From Perkinsela sp. CCAP 1560/9 (Eukaryota > Protista > Euglenozoa: Kinetoplastea), in NCBI GenBank assembly GCA_965644495.1, contig CBFFSA010000002.1, positions 930,001-994,000 of the forward strand: a DNA stretch of 64,000 nt. The letters run 5' to 3'. This document shows positions 1 to 53,636 of this stretch, piece after piece. A model generated the notes under the pieces. That model did not search any database, was not told where the DNA came from, and saw only the letters and a list, made by a program, of their open reading frames with translations. How positions within the stretch are numbered: position 1 is the first letter of the stretch; each line of letters begins with the position of its first letter. The position numbers were made by a program, and so were the translations under genes.

Positions 1-3000
1 AAAGGAAAACACACGTCTTCGATAGGTGGAAATCTGTATTGCATAGATTCGGAGGCGGTGTTTGGTACTGAGGTGCGCTCGTGTTCTCGTTGCAGGAAAA
101 GCGTTAGACTAGGAGGCATCCCATACTTTTCGTTTAAGAACGACTTGGACTTTGGTCTGAATTTAAGAGATCTCCGTTTGCCAACATTGGGAGTTGTCGA
201 ACGATCGGCCATATGCCGTATTCTGAATTTCCAGACGCTCTGTGAAATTCGTCATGGGCGGAATTTTGAGAAAAAATTTTGAAATCATGTTATTTCATTG
301 TTTTCAACAGGACCTCAGGACATAGCTCAGATTCTTCCAGCTACTGAACAGAGGGTGTTTGTGACATTTGTCGGTGAACAAACAAAAAGGAAAGCTGAAA
401 CAGATGCTTCCCTACAGGCATATTTCTCTGTTCGGGCTGACGCTACAAGAGCTTGGCTTTATTTTCTTAAAGAACACAATGTATTCTACTCAGATATTCA
501 CATATCGGAACAGAGAATAGAGGATTTGGTGAACGAAAGCAAAAGAATACTTGAAGAAGCAACTGTTGTCAACAATGCCATTTCAGTGGCAGCTTCACTA
601 TTAGCTCATAAACGAAACGCGATAGAAGAAGAAAAGTCGGAGGTAGAAAACGTTTTACTATGTGAACCTCCCCAACGAAATGCTGAGGATGAGATAGTCG
701 AAAGCCTAACAAACCTCATAAAAGGTAATGACCAAAGAAGGCACCATGCCAGAATTCACGTTACAAGTGCAGCTAAAGAGTTTAACGAGAATGACAAAAT
801 TTTGGGAACGGGGTTTCCAGATCTTTTTCCAGTTCTTTCTGAAGCGTCTGCCAATCTCCTAAAGCGCCCCCTTACTCCTGACAGCGGCCTGAAGCATTTG
901 TTGTTGCAAAAAGACCCTCGTTGGTGCAGAAACGGAAATTTTGGTTTCTTACATTGGGATCAAATCAGGCGCCATTCCTGAGCTCGAAGTGTGAGGGTCA
1001 AGCCCAATATGTGGAAAAAAGCAAAGAAACTTTTGGAAAAAGAAAATATAATTGTGCAGTTGAAGGAGGCACAGAAGGACCCTCAACGAAAGGAAAATCG
1101 TAAGCTTCTGTTGGAAGCATGCAATGTCCTGCATATTGTAACTGGTGATGTTCCATTTTCCGACGCAGCTCGGAATGCGTGCTTTAAACAAATGGTGGCA
1201 ATTCATGGGTTCATGGGTCATCCGACACTCTACGCCACCGTATCCCCATGCGATCCAGATATGAAAATTACCCTGGAATACCTATGCGCCTCTTCAAAAA
1301 GCGTGCAAGAGGATTTTCTAATTGACGATGCGTACCAAAGAGTACAAAAAGTGCGAGATCACCCTGCATATGCAGCGCAAACATTTCATTTAATTATTGA
1401 TGCGTTACTTACCACGATATTTGGTGTAGTCCCGCACAAACGATTTAAAAAATCAGGCCAATCGGTCAGTGCTATTTCAGAAGAAATGCCCGTCGGAATT
1501 TTCAAGATTATGAAGGGAATGTTTGGGGTGGTTGAGACACAAGGTAGAGGAAATTTGCATATGCATATTGTTATATGGGGCATCCCTCTCGCTGAGTATG
1601 CTTCCGAAAAGATTCATATGGAATCAGAAAGAAACAGTATAAGCCAATTAGTTTCTGATTGGATGACGGTTTCCGTGCCGTGGGATAAAGGAGATACGAG
1701 AAGCGCCGGGGGAAGAGTGGGGTTAGAGCCATGCCCGCCATTCGATAATCAGAAAGCCATGGATATCAGAGAGCATCGAGTTGCATCAACTGTGCAACAG
1801 CATGTGCATACGGAGAAATGTTTCAAAAATATAGGTGTAGCGCCAACAAAATGCCGATATGCATACCCACGCCAGGTTACGCCATTGAATGCTTTTTATT
1901 TGTTAGAACAATCAAGTTCTACACCAGGAAAAGTAGTGGCAAAAACAGTTTCAGAAAATATGGCGGCCCGTGCTGAAAGTACAGAGCCCTCTTTCTTTGG
2001 TTATATGTCACCCGACTTTCGCCCTCTATTGTACTTGCCTAAGAGATCATCAAGGGATAAAAATACTGCAGAATACAATTCGATCATGTCCTGCCTCCTT
2101 GGATTCAATACAAATGTTGTTTTTCTCGGATCAGCTTGCGTTGCAGCGATAACTACTTTCTATCTTTTTAAATATTTGTCCAAAAACTTGCTTGATATCA
2201 ATACTTGTATTGGGGCAGTTCAAGCAGCAAAACACAAAGAAAAATACGGAAGCCGAAGATCGCACGAGAATTCAGCAGACACATTGCTCTGCAATAGGCT
2301 TGGAAATAGTCAACTAGGAATGCAAGAAGTGTCGGCCCAGCTGGCCATGTATTGTTGCCTTGGTTATGAGTCGGAAGAATGCAGCCATATAGTTTCCTGC
2401 TTGGATGTACGGCAGGCATCTAAATTAATGGTCAAAGGCGTTTCAGGAGTACAGGAAGACGAAACAGAGACTGATAGCGAAATATCAGATAATGAAGGCC
2501 TCTCTGATGTGATTGTAAGGGATGATGGGTCTACTGAAATGTGCAGTAAGGCTCTGGACTATTACTTTCGAGGCACAGAACTTGAGTTCTTAAATTTTTA
2601 CCTTTACGACGCCACTATTGCGAGAGTTCGCATATCATCAGTGAAAACAATTGGTAAAACCAAGAAAGGGAGATCAAGAAACACTACATTCGCATTCAAG
2701 AAAGGACATCCGCTGATTGAAACTTTTACTCAGCGAATACGGAGCAAATATGTTATCCCATCTCCAGGGTATATACCACACTGGCCACATCTCCGGGATG
2801 TCGCTACAGATTGCGATCATTCTACAACTGTTTTAGCAAAAAAACACGCGAAATATTTTTCTGCCCTTATGCGCCCCTTCTCAAAAGATAAGAAAATATC
2901 ATATAGGCTAAGCGACTGGAAAGAGTACTTGAAGATACTCAAGGAGTGTAGTGAGGGAAAAAAGGTGGAAGGAACGGAATACCCTCCGGAAATTTGCTCT

Positions 3001-4639
3001 TTCTTAATTAAGATCATCAATAACTTGAGAATCGGAATTCAGGATTCTTCCTTTGAAGAACCAAGATGCATGATCAACATGTTTAGGCACCAGGAAGCTA
3101 CTACTTATGAAGAATGGAAATCAAAAGGCTTAACAGAAACAGCGCAAGATGTTGCAGAAGCTACTGGGTGTTTAGAAAAAGAAGCTGCGGATGGAATTCA
3201 GGAAGCGAACGATCTCCTTGCACAACATCAAGCAAATTCGAAGAAAGGAAAGAAAAGAAACGTTGAAACTGAACTTTTCTTGGTTGAACTTGAAGATCAA
3301 GTAGAAAGGCTTTTGAAAGATACATGGACATCGGATCAGAGAACGAATCATTGCTATGCTGCGCCTCAGAGCATCGGCGCAATGAGTACATCCTGTCGCG
3401 ATAACTTCGACAACAAAACATACAAGTTTCAGATAAAGGTGTCAGCTGGGAAATCCAGGAGGATAATTTCAAATCAAACGCCTGATCATGATATTGATGA
3501 GCTCAAGCAAAATAATGCAACGCAAGAAGATGTATTGGAAAGTTTGAATCAGAATCCGTTCTCGAAAGCCCGAGTTCTTAGTATAAACAAAAGTGTTGAG
3601 CTCATTTTTCGTTTAGGTGAAAAACATATAAGGAATAGGTCTCTCGACAAAAAGTTGGATAAGGATCAAGAGCAATTCGTTCTCAACACACTAAAGCAAA
3701 CAGAAAACCATATAGGATTGTCAGAAGGATACAAAGCCTTTCTACATGGAGGTCCGGGGTGTGGTAAAAGTGAAACCAGCCGATGCTTTATGGAAGCCAA
3801 GAACGCTTTCCGCCCAAGATCCGTACTTGCCTTCGGATACTCGGGGGCTTGCGCTGTCAACATTAATGGGGAGACCATACATTCTGGATTCTGTTTCCCA
3901 GCAGCGTGGAGTAAAAAGAGTAAGAGCGCTTTCCTAGATTATCTAAACCCTCAGAGGCTGAAAAAGTTAAAAGAAAAATTCAATGGCGTGGATACCGTTT
4001 TGATCGACGAAGCATCGTGTGTGTCAACTAAGACTTTGTGGCAAATTCATCAAAGACTTTGTGCAGTTTCTGAGAGCCAAGCAATATTTGGCGGGTTTTC
4101 CATAGTCATGGTCGGGGATTTTTTCCAATTACCCCAAGTACGAACTTCAGGCTCATCACTGGTCTACGGTGCTAGCTGCAGCCCCCATTCATGTACATTA
4201 GGAATTAATGATTTTGTTTTTACGAATCTTACCACCCAACATAGAGCAGATGGAACAAGTTTTTTTTTTTTTTTTTGGAGATGGAACAAGTGAAAAGGAC
4301 TTTGAACATCAAAGAATGCTGATGAACTTGCGGGATCCAAGCTTATGCGCTTCATCATTTAAGGGTTTCTTAAAAAACGCCCAGTATGCTACTGATGGGA
4401 TACCAAAGAATTCATGCATGCTGGTGATCACCAACAGAGAAAAAGAAGTACTTTCAAGACTTCGGAGTCAGGAATTTGCTCAGGAAAGAGGCATGTCCGT
4501 ATTGGAGCTCTCAATAGGAGGCGCTAGGTATTTTTCTGTTCCTGGGAAACCCGTGATGTGCCTAGTCAACCTATGCCCGCAGAGGCGACTAGTGAATGGT
4601 ACGCTAATGATTGAAGATGAAATCATTGTAAAGAACGAG
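1..4639 (+). pseudogene. Helitron Rep/PIF1-helicase (copy A), disrupted; runs into the assembly gap
   Basis: ORFs 58-282, 298-981 and 991-4293 share one frame, separated by single TGA codons. HUH Rep motifs: PTLYATVSP, VETQGRGNLHMH, YLFKYLSK. PIF1 motifs: GGPGCGKS, LIDEAS, GDFFQLP, QHR. Continues in another frame after a poly-T insertion at 4261-4278. Confidence 0.9.
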
Positions 4640-12788: not shown

Positions 12789-13659
12789 GCGGTGGTTGTA
12801 AAACTACCGCTCTACACTCGATTATTGAAAAAAAAGTGAACAAAAACAGTGAAAATATAAAGGGGAACACAGTAATATAATAGAAGAAAAAAATATAAAA
12901 GTGGGCTCCGGCGGTCCAAAACTGAAAAAAAAAATTGAAAAAAATGGGGGGTCCAGGGGGGGGCATGGTCGAGCAAATTTTTTCGAAAAAATTAGTTTTC
13001 GAAAAAGAACCGCAGAAAGGGTAACCGGGGTCTTGGCGCGCATTTTCCACCCCCCTACCCGGGGGTGACCCCCCCGCGTATCCGCAGGACGGATCCGCCA
13101 AGTTCGGATTTTTTAGGAAAAAAATTTTTGAAAAAAATTTCAACTTGGCGAAAAAAATGACAAAAAAAATATTTTTCCAAAATCGTTTCCCCTATTGTAT
13201 TTTGATAGTTTGGGACCTACACTAGCTTTCTACGCAGTTGCTTTCGCAAGGTATCACTTCTAACCGTGGTGCGCCCCTGAAAATGACCCATTTTTGACTA
13301 AAAAAGGTGAAAAAGTATTTTTCGGACCTAAAGGGGCATTTTTGTGTCGAAAGAATGGTGCGGTTGGAGTCGCATTCTCTACACAATACGTTCGGTAGGC
13401 TTCCATTCATGCCTACGAGTGATTTCCCACGCGCAAATGTCGGATTTAGTGCTCTGAGAGCAAAAATACGCGAAAATGACCCCATTTTTACCCGAAATTC
13501 GGCTATTTTTGGTTATAATCTTTCCGTTTTCCAGGCTAAATTTTCTTTTTTAGGCTCTTCGTTAAACGCGGCGGTAGTTTTCAACGCGAAGCGCGCAGCA
13601 TGAGTGACTTCTAAGTTGAAAACAACCACCGCGTTTAACGAAGAGCCTAAAAAAGAATT
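12789..13659 (+). mobile_element. Family-1 hairpin-ended element, full length
   Basis: 5' hairpin GCGGTGGTTGTAAAACTACCGC; terminal ~120-bp palindrome at 13538-13659. Confidence 0.88.
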
Positions 13660-14312
13660 TTTAACTTAACCCTTAACTTAAGGGAAAGTGGGGAAAGTGG
13701 GAATAAGTTAGCTCCCATGGCCTCCAGCCTCCGGAAAATGGTGTCATGTTTTTCGAGTTGATGAACTAATTTCGAACTGACGGATTGATTCTCTCCAACA
13801 AAGGCACCGAGAAATTTGGCGGCTTTTGCTTCTGTTGAAATGCCTTGGCACTCTAGAGTACCAGGTATTGCGATGTCATTCTTCCCGGTGAACCAAACGC
13901 ATTTTTGGCATGACAGCTCTATTCTTTTCTCCTGAAGAAGTACCTTAAACCGCTGGAAAGCCGTGCTAATGAGCGCAGGATCTTTAGAAGCAAAATTTAC
14001 GTCATCGATGTATGCGTAGATATATAGTTCGGGAAATTCATGTGCCATCGTTTCCAGCAATGGCTGGAAAAACGTACAGAAGTATAACGTAGATAACGAT
14101 GAACTCTGTTATCTGCTGTGCTATTAACCATTCCATGGAGGTTGCCACTTGAACCGTAGAATAACAACTCCGAGCTCTCTGAATATTCGGTGTGAAACAG
14201 TCTTTGGAATGGTTTCATCTTGTGGAAGGCAAACATTGCTTTCGCAATGTCGCCGGGTGGGGACGTTAAAGGCATTCTTGATATCCAGAGAAAGAATTGC
14301 ATGTCCGTCACA

Positions 14313-14856
14313 CAACTCTCCCTTTCCCCCCCTTTTCTTCTACGGGTATAGTTCTCTGTGCCGCGCAGGTGTGCCATCCTAAAAAAGTGGTCCGAAGAAC
14401 TGCCCGTCACCGCCCTCATAAACCACGGGCATTGCGTGGCATGCATGCTCGACGCCAATTGGAGAACCCTAGAGGTTCCGCTGAGAGGAGAAACACGACC
14501 GTGAGCACACTGAACGTGACGACACTAAAGCTTGAGGGGGAAGACGAGTTTTCCCTTCGAAGATGCACTCGTCTTTGAATTCTCTTTCATGATAGAAAAG
14601 GGGGCCTACATTATGTGCTTACAGGAAACCAGGTATAAATTTTCCAAGGATGTTCACGAGGATGGAATTATTTATAGGAAGGTCGAATATTTGGGGCATA
14701 GGTTTCATGTATACCTTCAGTCTGTCACAGGCGCGGATTCATACAACGGCATGGCTATCGTTAGCCGAAGGATACTAGGAAATGTGTGGAAGGTGAGTGG
14801 GAATCATCTTGTTTCGACATCTTGGAGTTATAACTATTCTACGTCAAAGATATACG
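14313..14856 (+). pseudogene. RTE-like element 5' fragment (start of APE domain)
   Basis: STLNVTTLKLEGEDEFS, CLQETR and YNGMAIVS match the N-terminal APE region of ORF 29935-34095. Confidence 0.8.
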
Positions 14857-16545
14857 TCAAGTGATGTCGATCATCTTGGAATACGTGGGGAGAGACACAT
14901 CGCCTGGCCTGGTGAGCCCCCCTCCGGGACCTCGATTGCCAAGACTGTGCTCTCGTTGGGGTGCCAAAGAGGCATGCCCGCAGGAGGAGGAAAAATGTTC
15001 AACCAGGGAATTGTGCCGGTTTATTATACCTTGTCCGTGTTTGCACACGAGTGCGTGATCCCCTTCAGGACCCAGAGGGAGTTTGCATTCGTCCGAGGGA
15101 CATGGACGAGTTTCTCCGTATACATACACCCCCAACCAACATAGACACAAGGTTCGAAACTCCGCGGGTTTGAATGCATAGCCCAGGTCCTTCGATGGGG
15201 TGACGAACGCCCAACTGCTAGCCCCTTTCCCTGATTGTGATACCCATCTGGTTCGCGTTCGTGTATCAGCGGAACTGTATGCTATGTTAAACTCCCTTTC
15301 CCCTATAGCGCGGATGATATCTTTCTGACGTGGGATGATACTTTCTTCCCATTCTGGCGGGTCAAGGTCAGCGTCTAGGTCAAGGTCAGCGCCCAACGGC
15401 GGGTCAGTATCTAAAAGAGGTTCGGTGTCCGATGGCTCGCGGGCTGTATCGACCTGTGTGGAAGAGTGAATGGATGGCTTTGGGGGAAAAGAGCGATGTG
15501 ATCGGTCGAGCTTTTGGGTGGTGGGGCAAAGGAAACAACCCGTTTCGGGATCTACGTGAGTGCCTCCGGCTTTTGCGTTCACGTCGTTGACGGCAGGTGA
15601 AAAACCTTCCGCGTCCAGTGGATTCCATCCGTCCTTGCTTGCTAGTACATTTCCGATGAACGCAGACCGAAACCTCCGTGTCTCTTCAGGCGTTGGATCT
15701 GAGCGCGGGCAGGGGCGTTCAGTGGGCAAAGTATTTCCTCAGCTGTGCTCAACAGTGAATTGTCTAGATGTTCGCAAACGCGTCGTATGCATTGTGGGGG
15801 TGTTGTACGTAGGGCGTAGACCAGTTGACAAAAGCCAGCACATTGTCGTACCAGTGCCATGTCGACCTGCGGGTCCTCAATTAAACAGGAAGCAACTAAC
15901 GTATCTTCTGCTGGTTCGATCGCATTGGTCATGAGGTATTCGGCGCAGTGTTCGTGGGATCCGATAGGGCTTCCTAGGATGTCGAAATTTCCTTCTGTGT
16001 TTTGCTTGTCTTTTGGTATATCTGGGAAAAGAAATGTTTGGTGTGCAGATGAGGGTTGTGTGATCTCGCTTTTCTTGCTATTGAGGTGTAGTCCGAGGTG
16101 ATCAAGTATGTCGAGAGCTTTTCCTACTTCTTCTTCTTTCCCTATAAAAACTCCACCGTCTAAATACCATAGGTTTAGAAGAAGTTCCGTGTACGACTGA
16201 ATTTGTTTGGTAACCTCCAACATAACTAAGGAAAAGGGAAGAGGACCGAGGGGATCGCCCTGTTGTACCCCTTCCGCGGACGGTACGAAACGGTGCCCGT
16301 AAGTTAAGCTACTGGTTTCGACGTAGCACCATTCAACCCATCTAGACAATTCCGGGAAGTGCTCTCTGGTGAGACTGATGAATGCGTCACGGCTAACGTA
16401 GCACCATTCTACCCATCTAGACAATTCCGGGAAGTGCTCTCTGGTGAGACTGATGCATGCGTCACGGCTAACGTTGTTAAATGCGTTGGGCAAATCAACT
16501 TTGAATAAAACTATATCGGAATTTGTTGTGTTAGTGTCCATTGTA
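14857..16545 (-). pseudogene. CRE-like RT-RLE relic related to 42297-45972
   Basis: VDLPNAFN, GVQQGDPLGP, WYLDG (degenerate YLDD), ILGSPIG, HALVC..RHN, RPGD; internal 75-bp tandem duplication; frameshift near 15650. Confidence 0.88.
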
Positions 16546-19506
16546 GGTCTCTGATTGTGCTTCTGCACAATAACCAGGACCCGACACAACACACTAAACG
16601 GGGATCCATCACCGTTCCGTACAATGAAACACTCACTGCTTGCGTAAGATGCAATACATGTGTAGTTTTCATTGGGAGCGAAGGTCCCGGCATAAAAATT
16701 ATGCAATATCTCATAAAATATATGAGCAAGGACATTGGTCCACCTGTGTACATTATACCAGCACTTCGCGCAGCCAATGACCACCTTCAAATGGGTCTGA
16801 ATTCAGAGCACAGAGTGCAAACTGACATTCCGATGGCACGCTTAGTTCTACAGAAATTGTCGAACATGACACATCGAAAGATAGAAGTTTCAACCGAAAT
16901 GGCAACTGCCTTTTGTCTCGGCCAATCCTCCGAGTATATGAGCCATAACTTCACATGGATCAATATGAACCGTGTAATGAAGTTCCTGGCAAATATCTCA
17001 AGTGAGTCAGATCACAGAGATCTAGAAATCAGTGACGATGATTCGTCACAAGACTCTGATATGGAGTTCGACGACGGTATCTTAGAGGCTCCTCTAATGA
17101 TCACCGAATATGATTGTGCAGTTCTTGCACCACTCCATGTGCGTTACATTCACAGGGGCGAAGATCTTCAAGACCTTGACCTGTATTCCTATGCAGGCAT
17201 TGTCAGCGTAAAGAAGAAAAGAGCTGAACTAGCTCAAGAAGAGCCCGATCATGATTCAGATTTTGAGTCAGGGACAAATCGAAGACGTCGTCGCGGACGT
17301 CGTGCTAATGGGAGATACGCCTTTGAGGACATTGAAGGCCTCCCGGAATTTGAGCCTGGAGATATTGTTGAGCAACAGGTGCGCTCTTTGCACACTGTGC
17401 CAGCTATACCAGGTTTTCCCATATTGAGTTCTTCAAAAGAACCTGGGGCACGAGCTCGAAGCCATCTTCGAGTAGCGAAACACATGGTGGCATTGTTTTC
17501 CCCATGGACGAAAGGCTCACCGAGCCATGAAATGACCCTAGAAGGGTTTGAAAAGCTTCTCAATGAAGCGAAAATAAATACGCCTGGAAAGTATGACATA
17601 ATGTGCAACTTTCTTCGGCTTTTACATGCTTCGAAGAATACAGAGAACGCGGCAGATTTGTATCGACGCAAAGATGCTTGCACTCTGGAAGAAGCAAGAT
17701 TAGCACGCAACATTGCGTACGAAAATGAGCTTGAAGTGCGAGAGGTTGAACCTCATCTTCAAGATGCTCTTGAAGCACAGCAGAACACTGCAGTGGTTAA
17801 TGAAGAGCGATTGGTTCAGCAGAATGCATACTGCGAACTACAAACGCGAGCTTTAACGGCCGCGTTAGGAGGTTCTACTGAGAACTCCTCTGAAGAAAAT
17901 GTTGATCTTGCATCGACAATGACAAGGACGAGGTCCAATATTTCAGTCATAAATGCGCGAGAGCGCTATGCTGAAATAATCCAAAACGAACGATTTGCAA
18001 CTTCGGCTCAATCTGAGCCAAGTGCACCAGTTGACAGAGCTCATTTTAATGAGGATCGTCCACTGGCTCGCAGTAATCAATACGAAGAGATTACGTTCGA
18101 TCGCAGCTACATATTGCGCGAAGACAACAATTCCATTGAACTGAACCAAGCACAGAAACAGTGCGTAAATCAAATTGAAGATTTACTAAACGGGAAACTA
18201 GACCCCGAGCGGAAATGTATGTTTCTGCTCGGTGGCCCCGGAACCGGGAAAAGTCTAGTTTCCCGTTTCATAATGCAAGAACTGGGAAGCCAATGTATTG
18301 CAATGGCGCCCACTGGGATCGCCGCATCAGTACTGCACTGTTGCACAATACACGCTTCCCTCTGCATACCGATAGGGGCTACTGCAAGAAATTTCAAACA
18401 TCTTTCAAGCAGTAGCCTTCTACCATACCAACAAAGGTATGAGACATGTCGATTAATCATAGTCGACGAAGTGTCAATGATCAGCAAGTGTTTCTTTGCC
18501 TGTATCAACACTAGGCTGCAGCAAATCAAAGGAAATGAGCAGCTTCCCTATGGAGGCATCAACATGCTCTTTGTTGGAGATTTTTATCAGCTGAGACCAG
18601 TACAAGGAGCGTCTCTTACCATAGAAGATAGCTCTCCTGGTAATAATCCCATTTTTGAGAATATTTTTCAAGTCTCGTATGTGTTTGAACTCAAACAGCA
18701 AATGCGAGCACGACAAGATACTGTATTTTCAGATATCTTGCGTGTTCTTCGAAAAGCTCCCAATGAGGGGTTGAAGAAGTTCATCCAATTGGTAAAACCT
18801 CTTACCTCTGAGGACCAAGAAAAGTTCCGCAATGCAATTGTCATTGTTGGAACAAATATTGAACGGCACAAGATTAATGTAGCAATGGCAAGAAATTTTG
18901 CCAGACGTCACAATTGCCCATTGTTCGCATGGACAGGCGATAACGTCCAAGGTAAACTCATTGACATACACCCTGAAGCATTTTCTGTATTTGTAAAAGG
19001 AGCACCCGGTGTAATCACCGAGAACATTGCTCCTTATACAATGAAAATTGCGGATGGGACAGTGATTGAAATGAGAGACCTTGTGTCAGACGATTTGTCA
19101 TACGACACTATTGATGGTGTTCGTTATCTACGAAAAGCCCCTTCTTTTATGCAATGCATTGAGAAGGGGTCAGGTGTAGAATTTTACGCCAAAAAGGCGC
19201 AGCACCATGATAAGGCTTCCCAAGGAAACTTTCAAGTGAAACTGGGGTTTGCCTATACGTATCACAAAGTACAAGGTATCACCGTGAAGAACGGTGTTAT
19301 TCTTGACTTGAATGATAAGGCGTGGTCCAAGAGACCGGAACTCGCCAGTAGCAATATCCAGGGCACAATGCCTCGATGATATTCGAGTGCTCCCTGGCAT
19401 GGGCACAGATCGCCCAGGAACACACCTGACTTCAGGTTACCATAGGCCTAAATTTTCGGCCATGGAAAAAGCAAATCGGCTTACCGATTTGACTTATCAA
19501 TTCTAA
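16546..19506 (+). pseudogene. Helitron Rep/PIF1-helicase (copy B), 5'-truncated, frameshifted near the 3' end
   Basis: YLIKYMSK; GGPGTGKS, IVDEVSM, GDFYQLRPV, QMR, TYHKVQG; the motif-VI-like VAISR lies in the shifted frame 19312-19506. Confidence 0.9.
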
Positions 19507-19546
19507 GAAATTAGATTGAAACGATCTTCTTAGGAAGACCTCTCTA

Positions 19547-19619
19547 GGGGGGAAGCACGCTTGATACCGGTCACAAGCCCGGCGTCTTCAGCTTCGGCAG
19601 AAGAAGTGCGAGTGACCCC
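19547..19619 (+). ncRNA. Twister ribozyme (type P1) fold
   Basis: GGGG-gG^AA-GCAC-GC-UUGAU-A-CCGG-U-CAC-AA-GC-CCGG-[P5 hairpin with UUCG loop]-A-GUGC-GA-GUG-A-CCCC. P1, P2, P4 and both pseudoknots pair. Confidence 0.82.
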
Positions 19620-19712
19620 AACGCTCACGCGCCATCTACCAAAAAAAATGTCTCCATCATAGCTGCAGAATTACGCTCCGTCAAAATTGCTTTCAAATTT
19701 TTTTATCGAAAT

Positions 19713-19912
19713 TTCAGAAGCTTGTTTCCTTCAAAAGCACCCACCGCGGCAGCGGGCCTGTACCCTCTCGAAGGGCGCTCCGGGAGGGCACTTCAAAAAA
19801 AGATATCAGAAGCTTGTTTCCTTCAAAATTACATGTCACGAGGTAAAGCACTCCCCGCGGCAGCGGGTCTGCACCCTCTCGAAGGGCCCTCCGGGCAGGC
19901 CCTTCAAAAACA
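19713..19912 (+). repeat. Two imperfect ~95-bp direct repeats
   Basis: CAGAAGCTTGTTTCCTTCAAAA...CCCTCTCGAAGGGC..CTTCAAAAA occurs twice. Confidence 0.75.
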
Positions 19913-19997
19913 AGACTTCTACGTTCATGTATTGCTTTTTAAGTTGAATGTTTCTAGACTCAGCTTGATTTTTTTGAAAACTTTCTTTGAAATTACT

Positions 19998-20328
19998 ATG
20001 GCCTCGGCGGAGAATCAATCAACCAATGGTAACGACATTTCCGACAAGGAAAGGGATACAAAGCGCAAAAGAGATGATTACTTAGAATCTCTACACGTTT
20101 TGCGCTCTGCGCGCGGAGCGTGACGAGCGCTCAATCACAATAGAACACCTTCCCTCCTCTACGACTAAAGAGGACCTTACCAAGCATTACGCTTCGTATG
20201 GTGAAATCGATTGTATAACAATCGTATCAAAAAAGTGACTGGCGCACGTGTGTTTTAGCACTACGGAAGAAGCGAAGCGCGCATCGAGCATTTACTTCAA
20301 AGGGAAAAGAAGAGAAACGGATACTTAA
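19998..20328 (+). pseudogene. RRM-domain ORF, disrupted copy
   Basis: Homologous to 48621-48950, with a small deletion and a TGA. Confidence 0.75.
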
Positions 20329-21002
20329 ATTTCTGAATAAGTGTGTAAGAAGACGTTTGAAAGTGAAAGTTGGTTTAAAATTTTGAAGTCATGATTCGAA
20401 GGTTAGCGAAGGAAAGAAAACACTTTTCTTTCGAGAAATTTTCGGCTTAAATTCGTCCACAGCACCGTTTTTTTACGATTCATCGCATCAAAGTTTTTCT
20501 GTGGTTTTACTTTGTGTCTCGGAAACCCTCTGTAAGTATTCGTAACTTTGCATTTTCTAAACTCAAATAAATACAATTGAAACCAAATTTGTTAAAAAAA
20601 TGTTTACATTTACATAGCAGATCTACGTTTGCAGTCATCACTTCTTCTATTTTTAGCCTGATCATTCAACAAATATGCTTTTGATGACTGAATTAGTGCA
20701 TATCCAACGTACTGTCAGAAAAGCGTTCCGACATGGCATTAACTGCACCCCTGGCGTAAACCAAATGAATCAAAACGAAGAAGTAAACCCACGAGGTAAA
20801 TCCCCCCCTTCAAAAGCCGGGGTGAATTCAAGTGCTTTTCAAAAAAAGAGGTCTCCACCCTGCTTCGTTCAAAATCGTGCGAACCGAAGGAAAACACATG
20901 TGAGCGGAAATATGGAAAAACAACCCTATTTTTGCCCAACTATCGGCTCTTTTTGGACCAAATCCAGAATTATCCCTCTGGTTTCTTTTACTCTCCTGTC
21001 AA

Positions 21003-21694
21003 ATTTTTCTTTTCTAAGCTCTTCGTTAAACGCGGTAAAGGAAAAAAATATAAAAGGGGGATCCGGTGGTCCAAAATTGAAAACAAAAATTGAAAAAAAT
21101 GGGGGGTCTATGGGGGGGGGGCATACCCTACCAGGGGGTGACCCCCCCTCGTATCCGCAAGACGAGTCCGTCAAGTTCCGATTTTTTCGGAAAAAACAAT
21201 TTGAAAAAATTTTCAAATTGACGAAAAAATTGGTAAAAAGAATATTTTTCCAAAGTTGTTTCGCCTATTGTATTTTTATAGTTTGGGACCTATTCTAGCT
21301 TTTTACGTCATTGGTTTTGCGAGGTGTCGCTTCTTGAAGCCGTGGTACGCCTCCCAAAATGTCCCATTTTTGATCAAAAAATGCGAAAAAGTAATTTTTG
21401 GACGCCAAGAGGTCTTTTTGAGTCGTACGAATCGTGTGGTTGGAGTCGCATTCTCGACTTTAGTGCTCTATATACAAAAATCACCCCATTTTTACCTACC
21501 TTTCCATTTTTACCTACCTCTTTCTACCATTTTTGGCTCAAATCCTTCCGTTTTCTTCCCCGTCCCTGGCCAATTTTCTTTTTTAGGCTTTTCGTTAAAC
21601 GCGGCGGGAGTTTTCAACGCGAAGCGCGCAGCATGAGTGACTTCTAAGTTGAAAACAACCACCGCGTTTAACGAAGAGCCTAAAAAAGAAAATT
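21003..21694 (+). mobile_element. Family-1 element, diverged and rearranged
   Basis: Internal homology to the family plus the terminal palindrome at 21572-21694. Confidence 0.8.
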
Positions 21695-21701
21695 ATTTAT
21701 T

Positions 21702-22785
21702 GCGGTGGTTGTATAACTACCGATCTACCCTCGATTGCGGTGGTTGTAAAACTACCGCTCTACACTCGATTATTGAAAAAAAATTGAACAAAAACAGTGA
21801 AAATATAAAGGGGAACACAGTAATATAATAGAAGAAAAAAATATAAAAGGGGGCTCCGGTGGAGTAAAACTGAAAAAAAAAATTGAAAAAAATGGTGGGT
21901 CCATGCGGGGGGTCCACGGATGGGGTCCAGGGGGGGGTCCAGGGGGGGGTCCAGGGGGGGGGTCCAGGGGGGGAACCAGGGGGGTCATGGTCCATGGAGG
22001 GGGTCCAGGGGGGGGTCCAGGGGGGGGGTCCAGGGGGGGGTCCAGGGGGGGGTCCAGGGGGGGGTCCAGGGGGGGGGACCAGGGGTCATGGTCGAGCAAA
22101 TTTTTTCGAAAAAATTAGATTTCGAAAAAAAACCGCAGAAAGGGCAGCCGGGGTCTTGGCGCGCATTTTCCACCCCCCTACCCCGGGGTGCCCCCCCCGC
22201 GTATCCGCAGGATGGGTCCGCCAAGTTCGGATTTTTTCGGAAAAAAAATTTTGAAAAAAATTTCAACTTGGCTAAAAAAATGGTAAAAAAAATATTTTTC
22301 CAAAATCGTTTCCCCTATTGTATTGTGATAGTTTGGGACCTACACTAGCTTTCTCCGCAGTAGTGTTCGCAAGGTATCCCTTCTTCGAACCGTGGTGCGC
22401 CCCTCAAAATGACCCATTTTTGACTAAAAAAGGTGAAAAAGTATTTTTCGGACCTAAAGGGGCATTTTTGTGTCGAAAGAATGGTATGGTTTGAGTCGCA
22501 TTCTCTACCCAATACGTTCGGTAGGCTTCCATTCATACCTACGAGTGATTTCCCACGCGCAAATGTCGGATTTAGTGCTCTGAGAGCAAAAGTACGCGAA
22601 AATCACCCCATTTTTACCAAAATTCGGCTATTTTTGGCTATAATCTTTCCGTTTTCCAGGCTAAATTTTCTTTTTTAGGCTCTTCATTAAACGCGGCGGT
22701 AGCTTTCAACGCGAAGCGCGCAGCATGAGTGACTTCTAAGTTGAAAACAACCACCGCGTTTAACGAAGAGCCTAAAAAAGAAAAT
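21702..22785 (+). mobile_element. Family-1 element, full length, with long (GGGGGGGTCCA)n array
   Basis: Duplicated 5' hairpin, VNTR at 21897-22086, palindrome at 22664-22785. Confidence 0.88.
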
Positions 22786-23477: not shown

Positions 23478-23549
23478 GCGCACGTAGTCTAACGGTTAGG
23501 ATGCTTGCCTTCCAAGCACGCGGACCGGGTTCGACTCCCGGCGTGCGCG
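23478..23549 (+). tRNA. tRNA-Gly(TCC)
   Basis: Acceptor stem GCGCACG/CGTGCGC; T arm CCGGG-TTCGACT-CCCGG; anticodon loop CT-TCC-AA (one stem mismatch); followed by TTTT. Confidence 0.88.
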
Positions 23550-28671: not shown

Positions 28672-28920
28672 CATTTTTCTTTCTTAGGCTCTTCGTTAAA
28701 CGCGGTGGAAGTTTTCAACGCGAAGCGCGCAGCATGAGTGACTTCTAGGTTGAAGACAACCGCCGCGTTTATCGAAGAGCCTAATTAAAAAATTAGCAGA
28801 AAAGGACCAAAAATTCTTTCGCGCCGCGAAGCGGCGCGGTCTGTGCTCTTGTGCTCGATTTTGGTCCTTTGGGGGCTGTGTGCGCGTTGGGCTTGCTATT
28901 TTGATGAAAAAATCATCAAT
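28672..28920 (+). repeat. Family-1 palindrome variant with extra CGCGCCGC-GAA-GCGGCGCG hairpin
   Basis: Matches 48112-48360. Confidence 0.8.
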
Positions 28921-39224: not shown

Positions 39225-40180
39225 GCGGTGGTTGTAAAACTACCGCTCTACACTCGATTATTGAAAAAAAAGTGAACAAAAACAGTGAAAATATAAAGAG
39301 GAACACAGTAATATAATAAAAGAAAAAAATATAAAAGGGGGCTCCGGTGGTCCAAAACTGAAAATTTTTTTTGAAAAAAATGGGGGGTCCATGGGGGGGT
39401 CCATGGGGGGGGTCCAGGGGGGGGGGTCCAGGGGGGGGGTCCAGGGGGGGGTCCAGGGGGGGGGTCCAGGGGGGGGGGGGCATGGTCGATCAAATTTTTT
39501 CGAAAAAATTAGTTTTCGAAAAAAAACCGCAGAAAGGGTAGCCGGGGTCTTGGCGCGCATTTTCCACCCCCCTACCCGGGGGTGACCCCCCCGCGTATCC
39601 GCAGGACGGGTCCGCCAAGTTCGGATTTTTTCGGAAAAATTTTTTCGAAAAAAAATTCAAATTGGCGAAAAAAATGACAAAAAAAATATTTTTCCAAAAT
39701 CGTTTCCCCTATTGTATTTTGATAGTTTGGGACCTACACTAGCTTTCTACGCAGTTGTTTTCGCAAGGTATCACTTCTTCGAACTATGGTGCGCCCCTCA
39801 AAATGACCCACTTTTGACTAAAAAAGGTGAAAAAGTATTTTTCGGACCTAAAGGGGCATTTTTGTGTCGAAAGAATGGTATGGTTGGAGTCGTATTCTCT
39901 ACCTAATACGTTCGGTAGGCTTTCATTCATGCCTGCGAGTGATTTCCCACGCGCAAATGTCGGATTTAGTGCTCTGAGAGCAAAAATACACGAAAATCAC
40001 CCCATTTTTACCCGAAATTCGGCTATTTTTGGCTGTAATCTTTCCGCTTTCCAGGCTAAATTTTCTTTTTTAGGCTCTTCGTTAAACGCGGCGGTAGTTT
40101 TCAACGCGAAGCGCGCAGCATGAGTGACTTCTAAGTTGAAAGCAACCACCGCGTTTAACGAAGAGCCTAAAAAAGAAATT
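39225..40180 (+). mobile_element. Family-1 hairpin-ended element, full length, ends defined by an empty site
   Basis: Filled site GAATAATT-[GCGG...AAAGAA]-ATT-GTAAAC versus empty site GAATAATT-GTAAAC at 50841-50854. Confidence 0.92.
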
Positions 40181-41865: not shown

Positions 41866-42293
41866 ATAATTTTCTTTTTTAGGCTCTTCGTTAAACGCGG
41901 TGGTTGTTTTCAATTTAGAAGTCACTCATGCTGCGCGCTTCGCGTTGAAAACTACCGCCGCGTTTAACGAAGAGCCTAAAAGAGAAAATTTAGCCTGGAA
42001 AACGGAAAGATTATAGCCAAAAATAGCCGAATTTCGGGGTAAAAATGGGGTGATTTTCGCGTATTTTTGCTGTCAGAGCACTAAATCCGACATTTACGCG
42101 TGGGAAATCACTCGTAGGCATGAATGGAAGCCTACTGAATTTTTCAATTTTTTTTTTCAGTTTTGGACCACCGGAGCCCCCTTTTATATTTTTTTCTTCT
42201 ATTATATTACTGTGTTCCTCTTTATATTTTCACTGTTTTTGTTCACTTTGTTTTCAATAATCGAGTGTAGAGCGGTAGTTTTACAACCACCGC
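41866..42293 (-). mobile_element. Family-1 element with internal deletions
   Basis: Palindrome at 41867-41990 and 5' hairpin at 42272-42293, inverted. Confidence 0.85.
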
Positions 42294-45972: not shown

Positions 45973-47042
45973 TTGAACCTGGCGAAAAAAATGACAAAAC
46001 AATTATTTTTCCAAAATTGTTTCCCCTATTGTATTTTGATAGTTTGGGACCTACACTAGCTTTCTCCGCAGTCGTTTTCGCAAGGTATCACTTCTTCGAA
46101 CCGTGGTGCGCCCCTCAAAATGACCCATTTTTGACTAAAAAAGGTGAAAAAATATTTTTCGGACCTAAAGGGGCATTTTTGTATCGAAAGAATGGTATGG
46201 TTGAAGTCGTATTCTCTATCCAATACGTTCGGTAGGCTTCCATTCATTCCTACGAGTGATTTCCCACACGCAAATGTCGGATTTAGTGCTCTGAGAGCAA
46301 AAATACACGAAAATCACCCCATTTTTACCCGAAATTCGGGTATATTTTGGGCTATAATCTTTCCGTTTTCCAGGCTAAATTTTCTTTTTTAGGCTCTTCA
46401 TTAAACGCGGCGGTAGTTTTCAACGCGAAGCGCGCAGCATGAGTGACTTCTAAGTTGAAAACAACCACCGCGTTTAACGAAGAGCCTAAAAAAGAAAATT
46501 ATTGTTTTTTCTTCTATTATTATTTTTCTTCTATTATTGTGTTTCTCTTTATATTTTCACTGTTTTGGTTCACTTTTTTTCAATATAATTTTCGTTTTTA
46601 GGCTCTTCGTTAAACGCGGTGGTTGTTTTCAACTTAGAAGTCGCTCATGCTGCTCGGTTCGCGTTGAAAACTACCACCGCGGTTAACGAAGAGCCTAAAA
46701 AAGAAAATTCGGCCTGGAAATCTGAAGAAAACACAAAGATGATAGCCAAAATTAGCCGATTTTTGGATAAAAATGGGGTGACTTTTGCGTGTTTTTGCTC
46801 TCAGAGCACTAGATCTGATATATGCGTGTGAGAAATGACTCGTAGGGATTTTTAGGTAATAATGGGGTGATTTTTGTATATTTTTGCTCTCAGAGCACTA
46901 AATCCGACATTTGCGTGTGGGAAATCACTCGTAGGCATGAATTCGAGCCTACCGAACGTATTGGGTAGAGAATGCGACTCCAACCACACCATTCTTTCGA
47001 CACAAAAAGGCCCCTTGGGGTCCGAAAAATACTTTTTCACCT
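45973..47042. mobile_element. Cluster of family-1 fragments in both orientations
   Basis: Palindromes at 46377-46500 and 46587-46710. Confidence 0.85.
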
Positions 47043-47859: not shown

Positions 47860-48360
47860 GACCCATTTTTGACGAAAAAAGGCGAAAAAGTATTTTTCGG
47901 ACAGTATTTTTCGGAAAGAATGGTGTGGTTGGTGTCGCATCCTCTGCCGATTACGTTCCGTAGCCTTACATTCATGCGTACGAGTGATTTCCCACACGCA
48001 AATGTCGGATTTAGTGCTCTGAGAGAAAAATACCCAAAAAGCACCCCATTATTACCTAAAAATCGGCTATTTGTGGCTCAAATCCTTCCGTTTTCTTCAG
48101 CATCCCTGGCCCATTTTTCTTTCTTAGGCTCTTCGTTAAACGCGGTGGAAGTTTTCAACGCGAAGCGCGCAGCATGAGTGACTTCTAGGTTGAAGACAAC
48201 CACCGCGTTTATCGAAGAGCCTAATTAAAAAATTAGCAGAAAAGGACCAAAAATTCTTTCGCGCCGCGAAGCGGCGCGGTCTGTGCTCTTGTGCTCGATT
48301 TTGGTCCTTTAGGAACTGTGTGCGCGTTGGGCTTGCTATTTTGATGAAAAAATCACCCAA
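47860..48360 (+). mobile_element. Family-1 3' part (variant subfamily)
   Basis: Internal homology, palindrome at 48112-48225 and GC hairpin at 48260-48278. Confidence 0.8.
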
Positions 48361-48620: not shown

Positions 48621-48950
48621 ATGACTTCGGCGGAGAATCAATCAACCAATGGTAACGACATTTCCGACAAGGAAAGAGATACAAAGCGCAAAAGAGATGA
48701 TTACTTAGAATCACTGCACGTTGTGCGCTCTGCGCGCGAAGAGTATGACGAGCGCTCAATCACAATAGAACACCTTCCCTCCTCTACGACTAAAGAAGAC
48801 CTTACCAAGCATTACGCTTCTTATGGTGAAATCAATTGCATAACAATCGTATCAAAAAAGGGACTGGCGCACGTGTGTTTTAGCACTACGGAAGAAGAAA
48901 AGCGTGCATCGAGCGTTTACTTCAAGGGGAAAAAGAAGAGAAACAGATAA
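48621..48950 (+). CDS. Small RRM-domain ORF (109 aa), probably TE-borne
   Basis: RSITIEHLPSSTTKEDLTKHYASYGEI..KGLAHVCF (RNP2/RNP1-like); second copy at 19998. Confidence 0.6.
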   Translation: MTSAENQSTNGNDISDKERDTKRKRDDYLESLHVVRSAREEYDERSITIEHLPSSTTKEDLTKHYASYGEINCITIVSKKGLAHVCFSTTEEEKRASSVYFKGKKKRNR

Positions 48951-53515: not shown

Positions 53516-53636
53516 AATTTTTCCTTTTTAGGCACTTCGTTAAACGTGGAGGTAGTTTTCAACGCGAAGCGCGCAGCATCAGTGACTTCTACGTTGAGAA
53601 CCACCGTGTTTAACGAAACGACTAGAAAAGAAATTC
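53516..53636 (+). repeat. Degenerate solo family-1 palindrome
   Basis: TTTTAGGCACTTCGTTAAACG..CAACGCGAAGCGCGCAGCAT..TTTAACGAA. Confidence 0.8.

Follow-up and report, generated by a model that had tools for sequence, protein, structure and literature searches.

A type-P1 twister ribozyme between the Rep-helicase and RRM genes of a Helitron family in Perkinsela

The genome of the kinetoplastid Perkinsela sp. CCAP 1560/9 harbors a family of Helitrons, rolling-circle DNA transposons, in which a twister ribozyme is situated between the Rep-helicase gene and a gene for an RRM-domain protein. We investigated this arrangement starting from positions 930,001 to 994,000 of contig CBFFSA010000002.1 (forward strand; assembly GCA_965644495.1). 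This stretch of 64,000 nucleotides (nt) is called the window, and coordinates refer to it unless one of the contigs of the assembly, cited as C with a number (the prefix G000 denotes this assembly), is named. The ribozyme, a type-P1 twister without P3 and with P5, occupies positions 19548 to 19619 on the + strand; its identification draws on the Rfam model RF03160, on a covariance model built for this genome (R1), and on covariation among its relatives. We favor, with a probability of about 0.45, the interpretation that this is a genuine and probably active twister, that it has been inherited as an internal part of an autonomous Helitron, and that its cleavage would uncouple the two cistrons of the element.

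Read directly, the sequence from 19547 to 19619 contains all of the twister modules in the correct order. P1 pairs G19548-G19551 with C19616-C19619 and leaves A19615 bulged; an earlier sequence-only reading of this DNA had used an alternative register, in which a G.A pair replaces the bulge. The cleavage-site loop has G19552 at position -1, followed by A19553 and A19554, and the cut is predicted between G19552 and A19553. P2 is formed by GCAC (19555-58) and GUGC (19606-09), the T2 pseudoknot by GC (19559-60) and GC (19577-78), and the linker UUGAUA leads from the T2 strand to P4 (CCGG 19567-70 and CCGG 19579-82). The loop L4 reads U-CAC-AA-GC and contains the partners for both T1 and T2, with U19571 and A19575-C19578 matching the consensus. 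The P5 hairpin, UCUUC-A-GC-UUCG-GC-A-GAAGA at 19585-19604, is preceded by CG and followed by a trailing A; the conserved GA (G19610-A19611) is located at the base of P2, and the T1 pseudoknot pairs CAC (19572-74) with GUG (19612-14). The sequence-only reading had parsed the site module by module, and each module that it listed is found where it had placed it. Its remark that G replaces U at position -1 agrees with our direct reading, and its interpretation of CAC/GUG as a compensatory change from CCC/GGG is borne out by relatives that display both forms of T1.

The curated Rfam model for this class (twister-P1, RF03160) has a gathering cut-off of 67.2 bits, and at gathering scores no twister is reported for the entire window; the sole Rfam match at the curated thresholds is a tRNA gene at 23478-23549 (57.8 bits). 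In a permissive scan of 401 nt, RF03160 matches positions 19548 to 19618 over its full length with 24.4 bits (E=0.005), and the alignment traces the loss in score to the deleted P3 and to an 18-nt insertion at P5. The sequence-only reading had proposed a search with the Rfam model as a check; the site fell below the gathering cut-off and yielded this full-length permissive match. Folding of the single sequence recovers P1, P2, P4, and P5.

The assembly searched for relatives comprises 21.0 Mb in 110 contigs. It contains 18 BLAST-detectable copies or variants of the 86-nt twister stretch and 54 full-length sub-threshold matches to RF03160, the top one with 39.1 bits and none at the cut-off. The genome-specific covariance model R1 (alignment A3), which was built from 11 of the twisters found with Rfam, matches 93 sites in the assembly at E<=0.01; the window site scores 76.8 bits, and its match at 19546-19620 is the only one in the window. 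Thirty-two distinct sequences were parsed into modules. These contain four variants of P2 (GCAC/GUGC, ACAC/GUGU, CUCC/GGAG, and CCCU/AGGG), three of P4, numerous variants of P1 and P5, and three Watson-Crick variants of T1 (CCC/GGG, CAC/GUG, and CCA/UGG); T1 is also found as CUC/GGG across the relatives. The cleavage-site AA, both GC dinucleotides, the U...AAGC of L4, and the GA are fixed across the parsed twisters.

Covariation was assessed in a model-based alignment of 28 distinct sequences (alignment A4), used instead of MAFFT alone, which misaligned the 3' strands of the CUCC/GGAG group. In this alignment, fitted to a model that already contained the P1, P2, and P4 helices, 91.4% of the cells of the twister structure, including both pseudoknots, are paired; shuffling the columns reduces this value to 69.6%, with none of 500 shuffles reaching the observed one, and sliding the partners leaves at most 48.8% paired. 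Both sides have changed in 18 of the 24 pairs. P1 is 81% paired and P2 95%, each with all four pairs doubly changed; P4 is 99% paired with one of four pairs doubly changed (its third pair occurs as GC, AU, and UA); and T1 is 96% paired with two of three pairs doubly changed. As T1 is absent from the covariance model, its covariation is independent of the alignment method. The T2 GC/GC is unchanged in all 28 sequences and hence provides no covariation signal; the cleavage-site AA is likewise invariant in all 28. RNAalifold, applied to the alignment of the relatives, predicts P1, P2, P4, and P5, and covariation is seen in each of these helices and in T1. On this evidence the twisters of the assembly form a genuine family, of which the window site is a regular member, and the observation of a twister at 19548-19619 is confirmed.

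The window twister is probably an active self-cleaver. The adenine 3' of the cut and the guanine at the base of P2 act as general acid and general base (PMC6154101), and both are consensus in the window copy, as are T1, T2, and L4. The copy deviates in two respects: position -1 is G, and an additional A separates T1 from the 3' strand of P1. In the twisters of this assembly, position -1 is U in most, and A or G in a few. An assay of about 1900 natural twisters revealed that an imperfect -1 position, insertions just after the pseudoknot, and an imperfect P1 are broadly tolerated, and that the pseudoknots and catalytic residues are sensitive to change (PMC11662667). With the core in its consensus form and the deviations at tolerated positions, cleavage appears likely.

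The host of this ribozyme is best recognized outside the window. Only the 3' third of the Rep-helicase open reading frame (ORF), the PIF1 part, remains in the window copy (16545-19506, + strand; PF05970 PIF1, E=1.5e-24), and the helicase domain that alone is kept falls in a frame of 940 amino acids (aa) at 16557-19379. The copy is 5'-truncated at 16545, and reverse-transcriptase ORFs of a retroelement are found on the - strand just upstream of the truncation point (13647-16790). An 8-nt deletion after 19345 shifts the helicase frame, which reaches the stop codon TAA (19504-19506) only via this deletion. Given its truncated 5' end and the frameshifts in both of its ORFs, the window copy reads as a dead Helitron. 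It is collinear at 97.6% identity with G000:C8:158840-163972, and at C8:152912-161809 (L019:913-9807) an intact copy encodes the protein in a single frame of 2965 aa. This frame contains PF20209 (DUF6570) at aa 1350-1475, PF14214 Helitron_like_N at aa 1601-1821 (76 bits), and PF05970 PIF1 at aa 2509-2702 (88 bits), that is, the HUH Rep domain followed by the PIF1 helicase in one ORF by which a Helitron RepHel protein is recognized. About 1300 aa of repeated zinc-finger-like modules make up its N-terminus. The intact ORF ends ...RLTDLTYQF-TAA, and 41 nt later follows a twister identical to that of the window. The distance of 41 nt between stop codon and ribozyme that the sequence-only reading had given is correct for the TAA at 19504-19506, which corresponds to the true ORF end in the intact copy. 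The same copy, with its Helitron_like_N and PIF1 domains, upholds the claim that a sense-strand twister directly follows a Helitron Rep-helicase ORF.

Further copies of this Helitron family (family A) are located on C4, C18 (two), C51, C60, and C2 (at 40.9 kb), and degraded ones on C4 (at 11.4 kb), C5 (two), and C1. Over the 3' 2.9 kb, the copies on C8 and C4 share 99.6% identity, which suggests that the family is young, and it may still be active. The twister is present in all 12 of the examined family copies that retain the end of the ORF. Conservation of the spacing in other copies, which had been named beforehand as a check, is observed in the examined family copies, in a 90%-identical sub-lineage, and in one old fragment. 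The sub-lineage (L009, C4:8437-12370) has helicase DNA of 90% identity and a twister with one substitution and a 4-nt deletion; the RRM ORF that follows this twister, at 50% protein identity, is still open with its motifs kept. The old fragment (L013, C12:292319-292390) is isolated. The last 57 aa of its helicase are 61% identical (E=3e-15), and they are followed by a stop codon, about 40 nt, and a twister of the CAC/GUG type. Compared to family A, the coding DNA of this fragment is about 56% identical and the spacer about 47%, whereas the twister core reaches 95% identity over its first 40 nt; its P5 differs in sequence yet still pairs. The L013 twister itself is probably dead now; nevertheless this single locus is the best sign that the ribozyme was kept with the Helitron lineage under constraint. 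In seven close copies the twister is free of variable sites, compared to a mean of 5.6 in segments of equal size; 7.8% of such segments are likewise without a variable site, and the signal for constraint is weak. Comparison of these copies and lineages indicates that the pairing of Helitron and twister is real and inherited. A locus on C7 (L026) was considered as a third Helitron lineage with a twister and rejected, as another repeat splits the helicase remnant from the twister.

The twister is internal to the transposed unit: the copies are homologous for 3-9 kb upstream of the twister and for 2.1 kb downstream of it, where the collinearity ends at a shared palindrome. The order within the element is the Rep-helicase ORF (2965 aa), 41 nt, the twister, a 379-nt leader, an RRM ORF of 113 aa, and a 3' terminal region with the palindrome. 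The sequence-only reading had placed the twister at the 3' end of the transposase ORF, and this position stands; the second gene downstream, which shifts the most probable role of the ribozyme, had escaped it. The stop-to-twister spacer of about 40 nt (19507-19547, + strand) contains the hairpin UCUUC-UUAG-GAAGA at 19525-19538, then CCUCUCUAG; it is conserved in the family copies and in the 90% sub-lineage, but its conservation does not extend to L013. Twister and second ORF are separated by a leader (19620-19997, + strand), which is present in the family-A copies checked. It holds a run of eight A (19643-19650) and a repeat duplicated at a spacing of 111 nt, with a 66-nt core at 19734-19799 and at 19845-19910. 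The A8 run raised the possibility that a twister RNA with a poly(A) tail was retroposed into the element; this was rejected, since no target-site duplication was seen on reading the flanks and L013 has no A-run. No antisense strand complementary to the twister is found within about 250 nt upstream or 800 nt downstream (19300-20400).

The RRM-domain ORF (19998-20336, + strand) encodes 113 aa in intact copies, where its ATG follows the twister by 379 nt; the C8 copy matches PF00076 RRM_1 with 27.5 bits (cut-off 20.7). In the window copy, two deletions disrupt this ORF, one of 2 nt after 20115 and one of 1 nt after 20304. The ORF is intact in seven Helitron copies at 97-100% identity, and about 30 RRM relatives at 30-100% identity are found in the assembly. 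A separate, intact RRM ORF in the window (48621-48950, + strand) has 94% DNA identity to that of the Helitron; it is flanked by a copy of the palindromic repeat and by a (GGGTCCATGGGG)n array.

Canonical Helitrons begin with 5'-TC and end with CTRR-3' after a subterminal hairpin, insert between A and T, and create no target-site duplication. The hairpin and CTAG at 19525-19547 resemble such a 3' end; as a terminus of the element they were rejected, because the copies remain collinear for a further 2.1 kb, up to the shared palindromic end. The 3' terminal region (21126-21700, + strand) has homology to the 3' part of an abundant repeat and ends in a palindrome of 117 nt (21574-21690). Past this palindrome, homology among the copies in C8, C4, C18, and the window breaks off within about 15 nt after ...GAGCCTAAAA, and the shared boundary reads ...GAGCCTAAAA(AAGAAAATTATT), which is not CTRR. 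To judge from this boundary, the 3' end looks more like those of Helentrons or Helitron2 elements. Over its last ~600 bp, the element shares ~82% identity with the 3' part of a ~950-bp repeat, which is abundant and ends in the same palindrome. In the window, the ~117-nt palindrome is also found at 13538-13658, 22663-22782, 28673-28782, 40058-40177, 41872-41991, 46377-46496, 48113-48222, and 53516-53632; tandem copies of the ~950-bp repeat are located about 100 bp upstream of the intact Helitron ORF (C8:151110-152783). The repeat that follows the Helitron end contains, at 21897-22085, a (G6-8TCCA)n tandem array whose periods are 12, 25, and 78 nt.

The remaining twisters of the genome point to a likely source for the one in the Helitron. 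In five other twister families (B to F) the copies become homologous 7-30 nt (mostly 11-25) 5' of the twister and stay so for hundreds of bases downstream of it, which reveals that the ribozyme heads these repeats. Seven twisters are followed, 3.0-4.1 kb downstream and on the same strand, by a Phage_integrase (tyrosine recombinase) domain (twister/recombinase positions C6:103324/107253, C1:2543178/2547348, C29:60883/57113, C82:16218/12696, C2:795246/791682, C2:1235364/1231875, and C7:282775/279794); with 93 twisters and 53 domain matches in 21 Mb, chance alone would yield about 0.15 such pairs. These seven pairs fit twister-headed retroelements of the DIRS or Ngaro kind. Pfam found nothing in the ORFs downstream of several other twister families, and it is the co-location with recombinases that speaks for the retroelement nature of the other families. 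The core of the Helitron twister, without P1 and P5, is 83-90% identical to those of families B, C, and E, with which it shares the non-essential linker UUGAUA, and only 55-62% identical to the other two clades. These identities suggest that the Helitron lineage probably acquired its twister from retroelement-head twisters of the same genome. The tie between twisters and retroelements that the sequence-only reading had cited in general terms thus applies to the nearest relatives, which head repeats in this genome, a connection that the reading had missed for this site. Families B, C, and E also share about 12 nt just 5' of P1, CATTATCACAGC-like and ending CAG/G like a splice acceptor (at about 1488-1500 in L014, L017, L032, L035, L039, and L041). 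In the metagenome contig Ga0222724_1003999 (L062:700-712), TATCACAATGCC is followed by the 5' half of a CAC-type twister, the 3' half being degenerate.

Under the interpretation that we favor, sense-strand transcription would proceed through both Helitron ORFs, and the twister would fold co-transcriptionally and cut between G19552 and A19553. The upstream product would be the Rep-helicase RNA, with a 2',3'-cyclic phosphate end just past the small hairpin; the downstream product would start with a 5'-OH and the folded ribozyme body and would carry the RRM ORF. The cut would separate the two cistrons and, by analogy with the variants of the Perere-3 twister (PMC8501958), would most plausibly license expression of the RRM gene; removal of the poly(A) tail from the transposase RNA would be a side effect. 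The RRM ORF being intact in seven copies, together with the intact RRM of L009 at 50% identity, suggests that the downstream product matters. An extension of this scheme, which we regard as rather doubtful, is that the released 3' RNA, with the folded ribozyme, the RRM coding region, and the terminal palindromes, forms an RNA-protein unit that acts in transposition or regulates it, the RRM protein binding to this RNA or to single-stranded transposon DNA.

Several observations weigh against an inherited function of the twister in the Helitron, and several speak for a passenger relic. According to this alternative, which is unlikely without being far-fetched, the head at the 5' end of a twister-headed retroelement was either captured by the Helitron or came to lie in the Helitron's 3' region; the ribozyme would be of no use to the element, might still cut, and would persist only through the youth of the family. 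Helitrons are a class known to pick up foreign DNA, and the nearest relatives are the retroelement-head twisters of families B, C, and E. As the copies of the Helitron family are young and 97-99.6% identical, shared identity is expected, conservation among them carries little information, and there is little evidence for selection. In degraded copies the motif is freely lost (substitutions in P2 and T2 in the C60 copy, the 4-nt deletion in L009), and L013 is a single fragment with an A at the position of the general-base G. A second, distant Helitron family at about 892-4164 (Helitron_like_N at 892-1575; helicase matches 27-30% identical) has no twister in the R1 scan of the window, which indicates that Helitrons of this genome do not need one; the separate RRM copy at 48621-48950 has neither twister nor helicase upstream. 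At G000:C9:582550-583081, a C-terminal helicase fragment (74% identical) is followed after 70 nt by a 39%-identical RRM match with no R1 twister match, and this may represent a lineage without the ribozyme or one in which it was deleted. Outside this genome, the pairing was not found among the helicase homologues and metagenome contigs examined: the closest helicase homologues are 34-35% identical, the one homologue contig with DNA (L060) has no twister in the 113 nt after the stop codon, and an exact 20-mer scan of metagenome contigs gave two matches, the degenerate half-twister in L062 and a partial one in L061, with no helicase near either. What speaks against a mere passenger is that L013 keeps the spacing while 95% of the first 40 nt of its twister core are identical to family A, compared to about 56% of its coding DNA; that the helicase-twister-RRM layout is kept in a sub-lineage whose RRM has diverged to 50%; and that neither flanking retroelement sequence nor a target-site duplication nor a poly(A) boundary points to an insertion.

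The motif itself also faces objections: the Rfam score of 24.4 bits is far under the cut-off, and the single-sequence fold is about as stable as those of shuffled sequences (z=0.37), so the motif alone is suggestive rather than proof. These values, and the U that other twisters of the assembly have at -1 as a rule, could be taken to indicate a chance resemblance, or a dead motif blocked by the G at -1 and the extra A beside P1. Given the covariation across 28 relatives, the unmodelled T1 included, the consensus state of all catalytic and tertiary-contact positions, and the location of the two deviations at positions reported as broadly tolerant (PMC11662667), we consider this explanation close to negligible. 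Quite improbable in our view, but not to the same degree, is the main idea of the sequence-only reading, in which the twister serves as 3'-end maker or self-limiter of the transposase, the tailless Rep-helicase RNA is what matters, and the downstream RNA is a by-product. The conserved location 41 nt past the stop codon and the hairpin at 19525-19538 just 5' of the cut, which could cap the cleaved 3' end, agree with this idea. In eukaryotes, expression is generally low from mRNAs that ribozymes have cleaved and that lack poly(A), as would befit a self-limiting transposon. However, the hairpin is not conserved in L013, and an intact RRM ORF is conserved downstream in two sub-lineages. The fallback of that reading, which takes the twister for the 5' head of a separate retroelement, either nested in the Helitron or adjoining it, with the hairpin and CTAG at 19525-19547 as the true Helitron end, has fared worse and is very unlikely. 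The CTAG directly before the twister, the 5' boundaries of families B to F, and the seven twisters upstream of tyrosine-recombinase domains would agree with a retroelement head. At this site, however, homology extends to both sides of the ribozyme, so that the ribozyme does not mark a 5' boundary of the Perere-3 or R2 type, as it does in families B to F; the junction is identical in all copies. The 2.1 kb downstream contain the RRM ORF and the homology to the terminal repeat, that is, the 3' end of the Helitron, and no reverse transcriptase, endonuclease, or recombinase. In addition, the sequence downstream of the twister never occurs twister-headed without the helicase, and the CAC/GUG type is found only in Helitron copies.

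To our knowledge, self-cleaving ribozymes in eukaryotic mobile elements have so far been tied to elements that move via RNA: non-LTR (long terminal repeat) retrotransposons, Penelope-like elements, and retrozymes. Here the twister is internal to an autonomous, possibly active Helitron, which moves as DNA, and lies between its transposase and accessory RRM genes. The sequence-only reading had known of no described Helitron-twister pairing, and a full-text literature search likewise returned no paper that ties twisters or other self-cleaving ribozymes to Helitrons, the co-mentions being separate. We regard the finding as a new context for a known ribozyme class; it would count as a new kind of system only if the twister proved to play a part in the Helitron life cycle. 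If the twister cuts, it would provide a simple and testable case of a ribozyme splitting a two-gene transcript in a eukaryotic DNA transposon; if it forms part of an RNA-protein unit, it would be the first case of a catalytic RNA that takes part in the life cycle of such a transposon. The relationship to the retroelement-head twisters also illustrates how ribozymes might pass between transposon classes within one genome. The at least 93 P3-less twisters, with three sequence clades and natural compensatory variants of T1, form a compact test set for structure and function, and the Rfam cut-off misses the twisters of the whole genome (none of the 54 matches reaches it). These aspects should be of solid interest to specialists in ribozymes and transposons.

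As a ribozyme, the window twister is similar to other type-P1 twisters (RF03160, rice Osa-1-4; P1-P2-P4, T1, T2) in the order of the helices, the cleavage-site AA, the L4 motif U-NNN-AAGC, the GC/GC and 3-bp pseudoknots, the G at the base of P2, and the optional P5; P3 is missing, as it is in the rice twister (PMC6154101). It differs in having G instead of U at -1, an extra A between T1 and P1, and CAC/GUG instead of CCC/GGG in T1, and in scoring under the Rfam cut-off.

Among ribozymes in mobile elements, twisters that head non-LTR retrotransposons are known from Perere-3, where analysis of twister variants revealed that cleavage is necessary for a downstream reporter to be translated (PMC8501958). 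These too reside in a mobile element, precede an ORF, and are transcribed together with upstream sequence, and their layout at the 5' head of repeats is matched by the other twisters of this genome. In contrast, the twister described here is hosted by a rolling-circle DNA transposon and has an internal position with an ORF on either side, the downstream ORF encodes an RRM protein and not an endonuclease and reverse transcriptase, and P1 is borne by the element instead of being supplied by a target-site duplication. Ribozymes similar to that of hepatitis delta virus (HDV) are carried by RTE and L1Tc elements, among others. Such HDV-like ribozymes are also present at the 5' ends of R2 non-LTR retrotransposons (summarised in PMC8501958). 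Those of R2 likewise cut near their own 5' end, free the downstream RNA, and stay at its 5' end; however, both the ribozyme class and the element class are different, and the twister reported here is internal and not terminal.

Catalytic RNA is also coupled to transposition in the IStrons of Clostridioides, which are fusions of a group I intron with an HUH transposon of the IS200/IS605 type. Similar to the Helitron described here, IStrons combine a catalytic RNA with an HUH-transposase element that acts on single-stranded DNA; however, they are bacterial and self-splicing and remove the element from host transcripts, whereas the present ribozyme is of the self-cleaving type and lies between the element's own cistrons. 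Autonomous Helitrons and Helentrons carry accessory genes after RepHel, for example for RPA-like single-strand-binding proteins. The family described here has in common with them a giant RepHel ORF that contains Helitron_like_N and PIF1 and precedes a small ORF for a nucleic-acid-binding protein, and a 3' hairpin or palindrome shared with abundant, putatively non-autonomous partners; it differs from them in that the accessory gene encodes an RRM protein, the 3' end is not the canonical CTRR, and a ribozyme is located between the genes.

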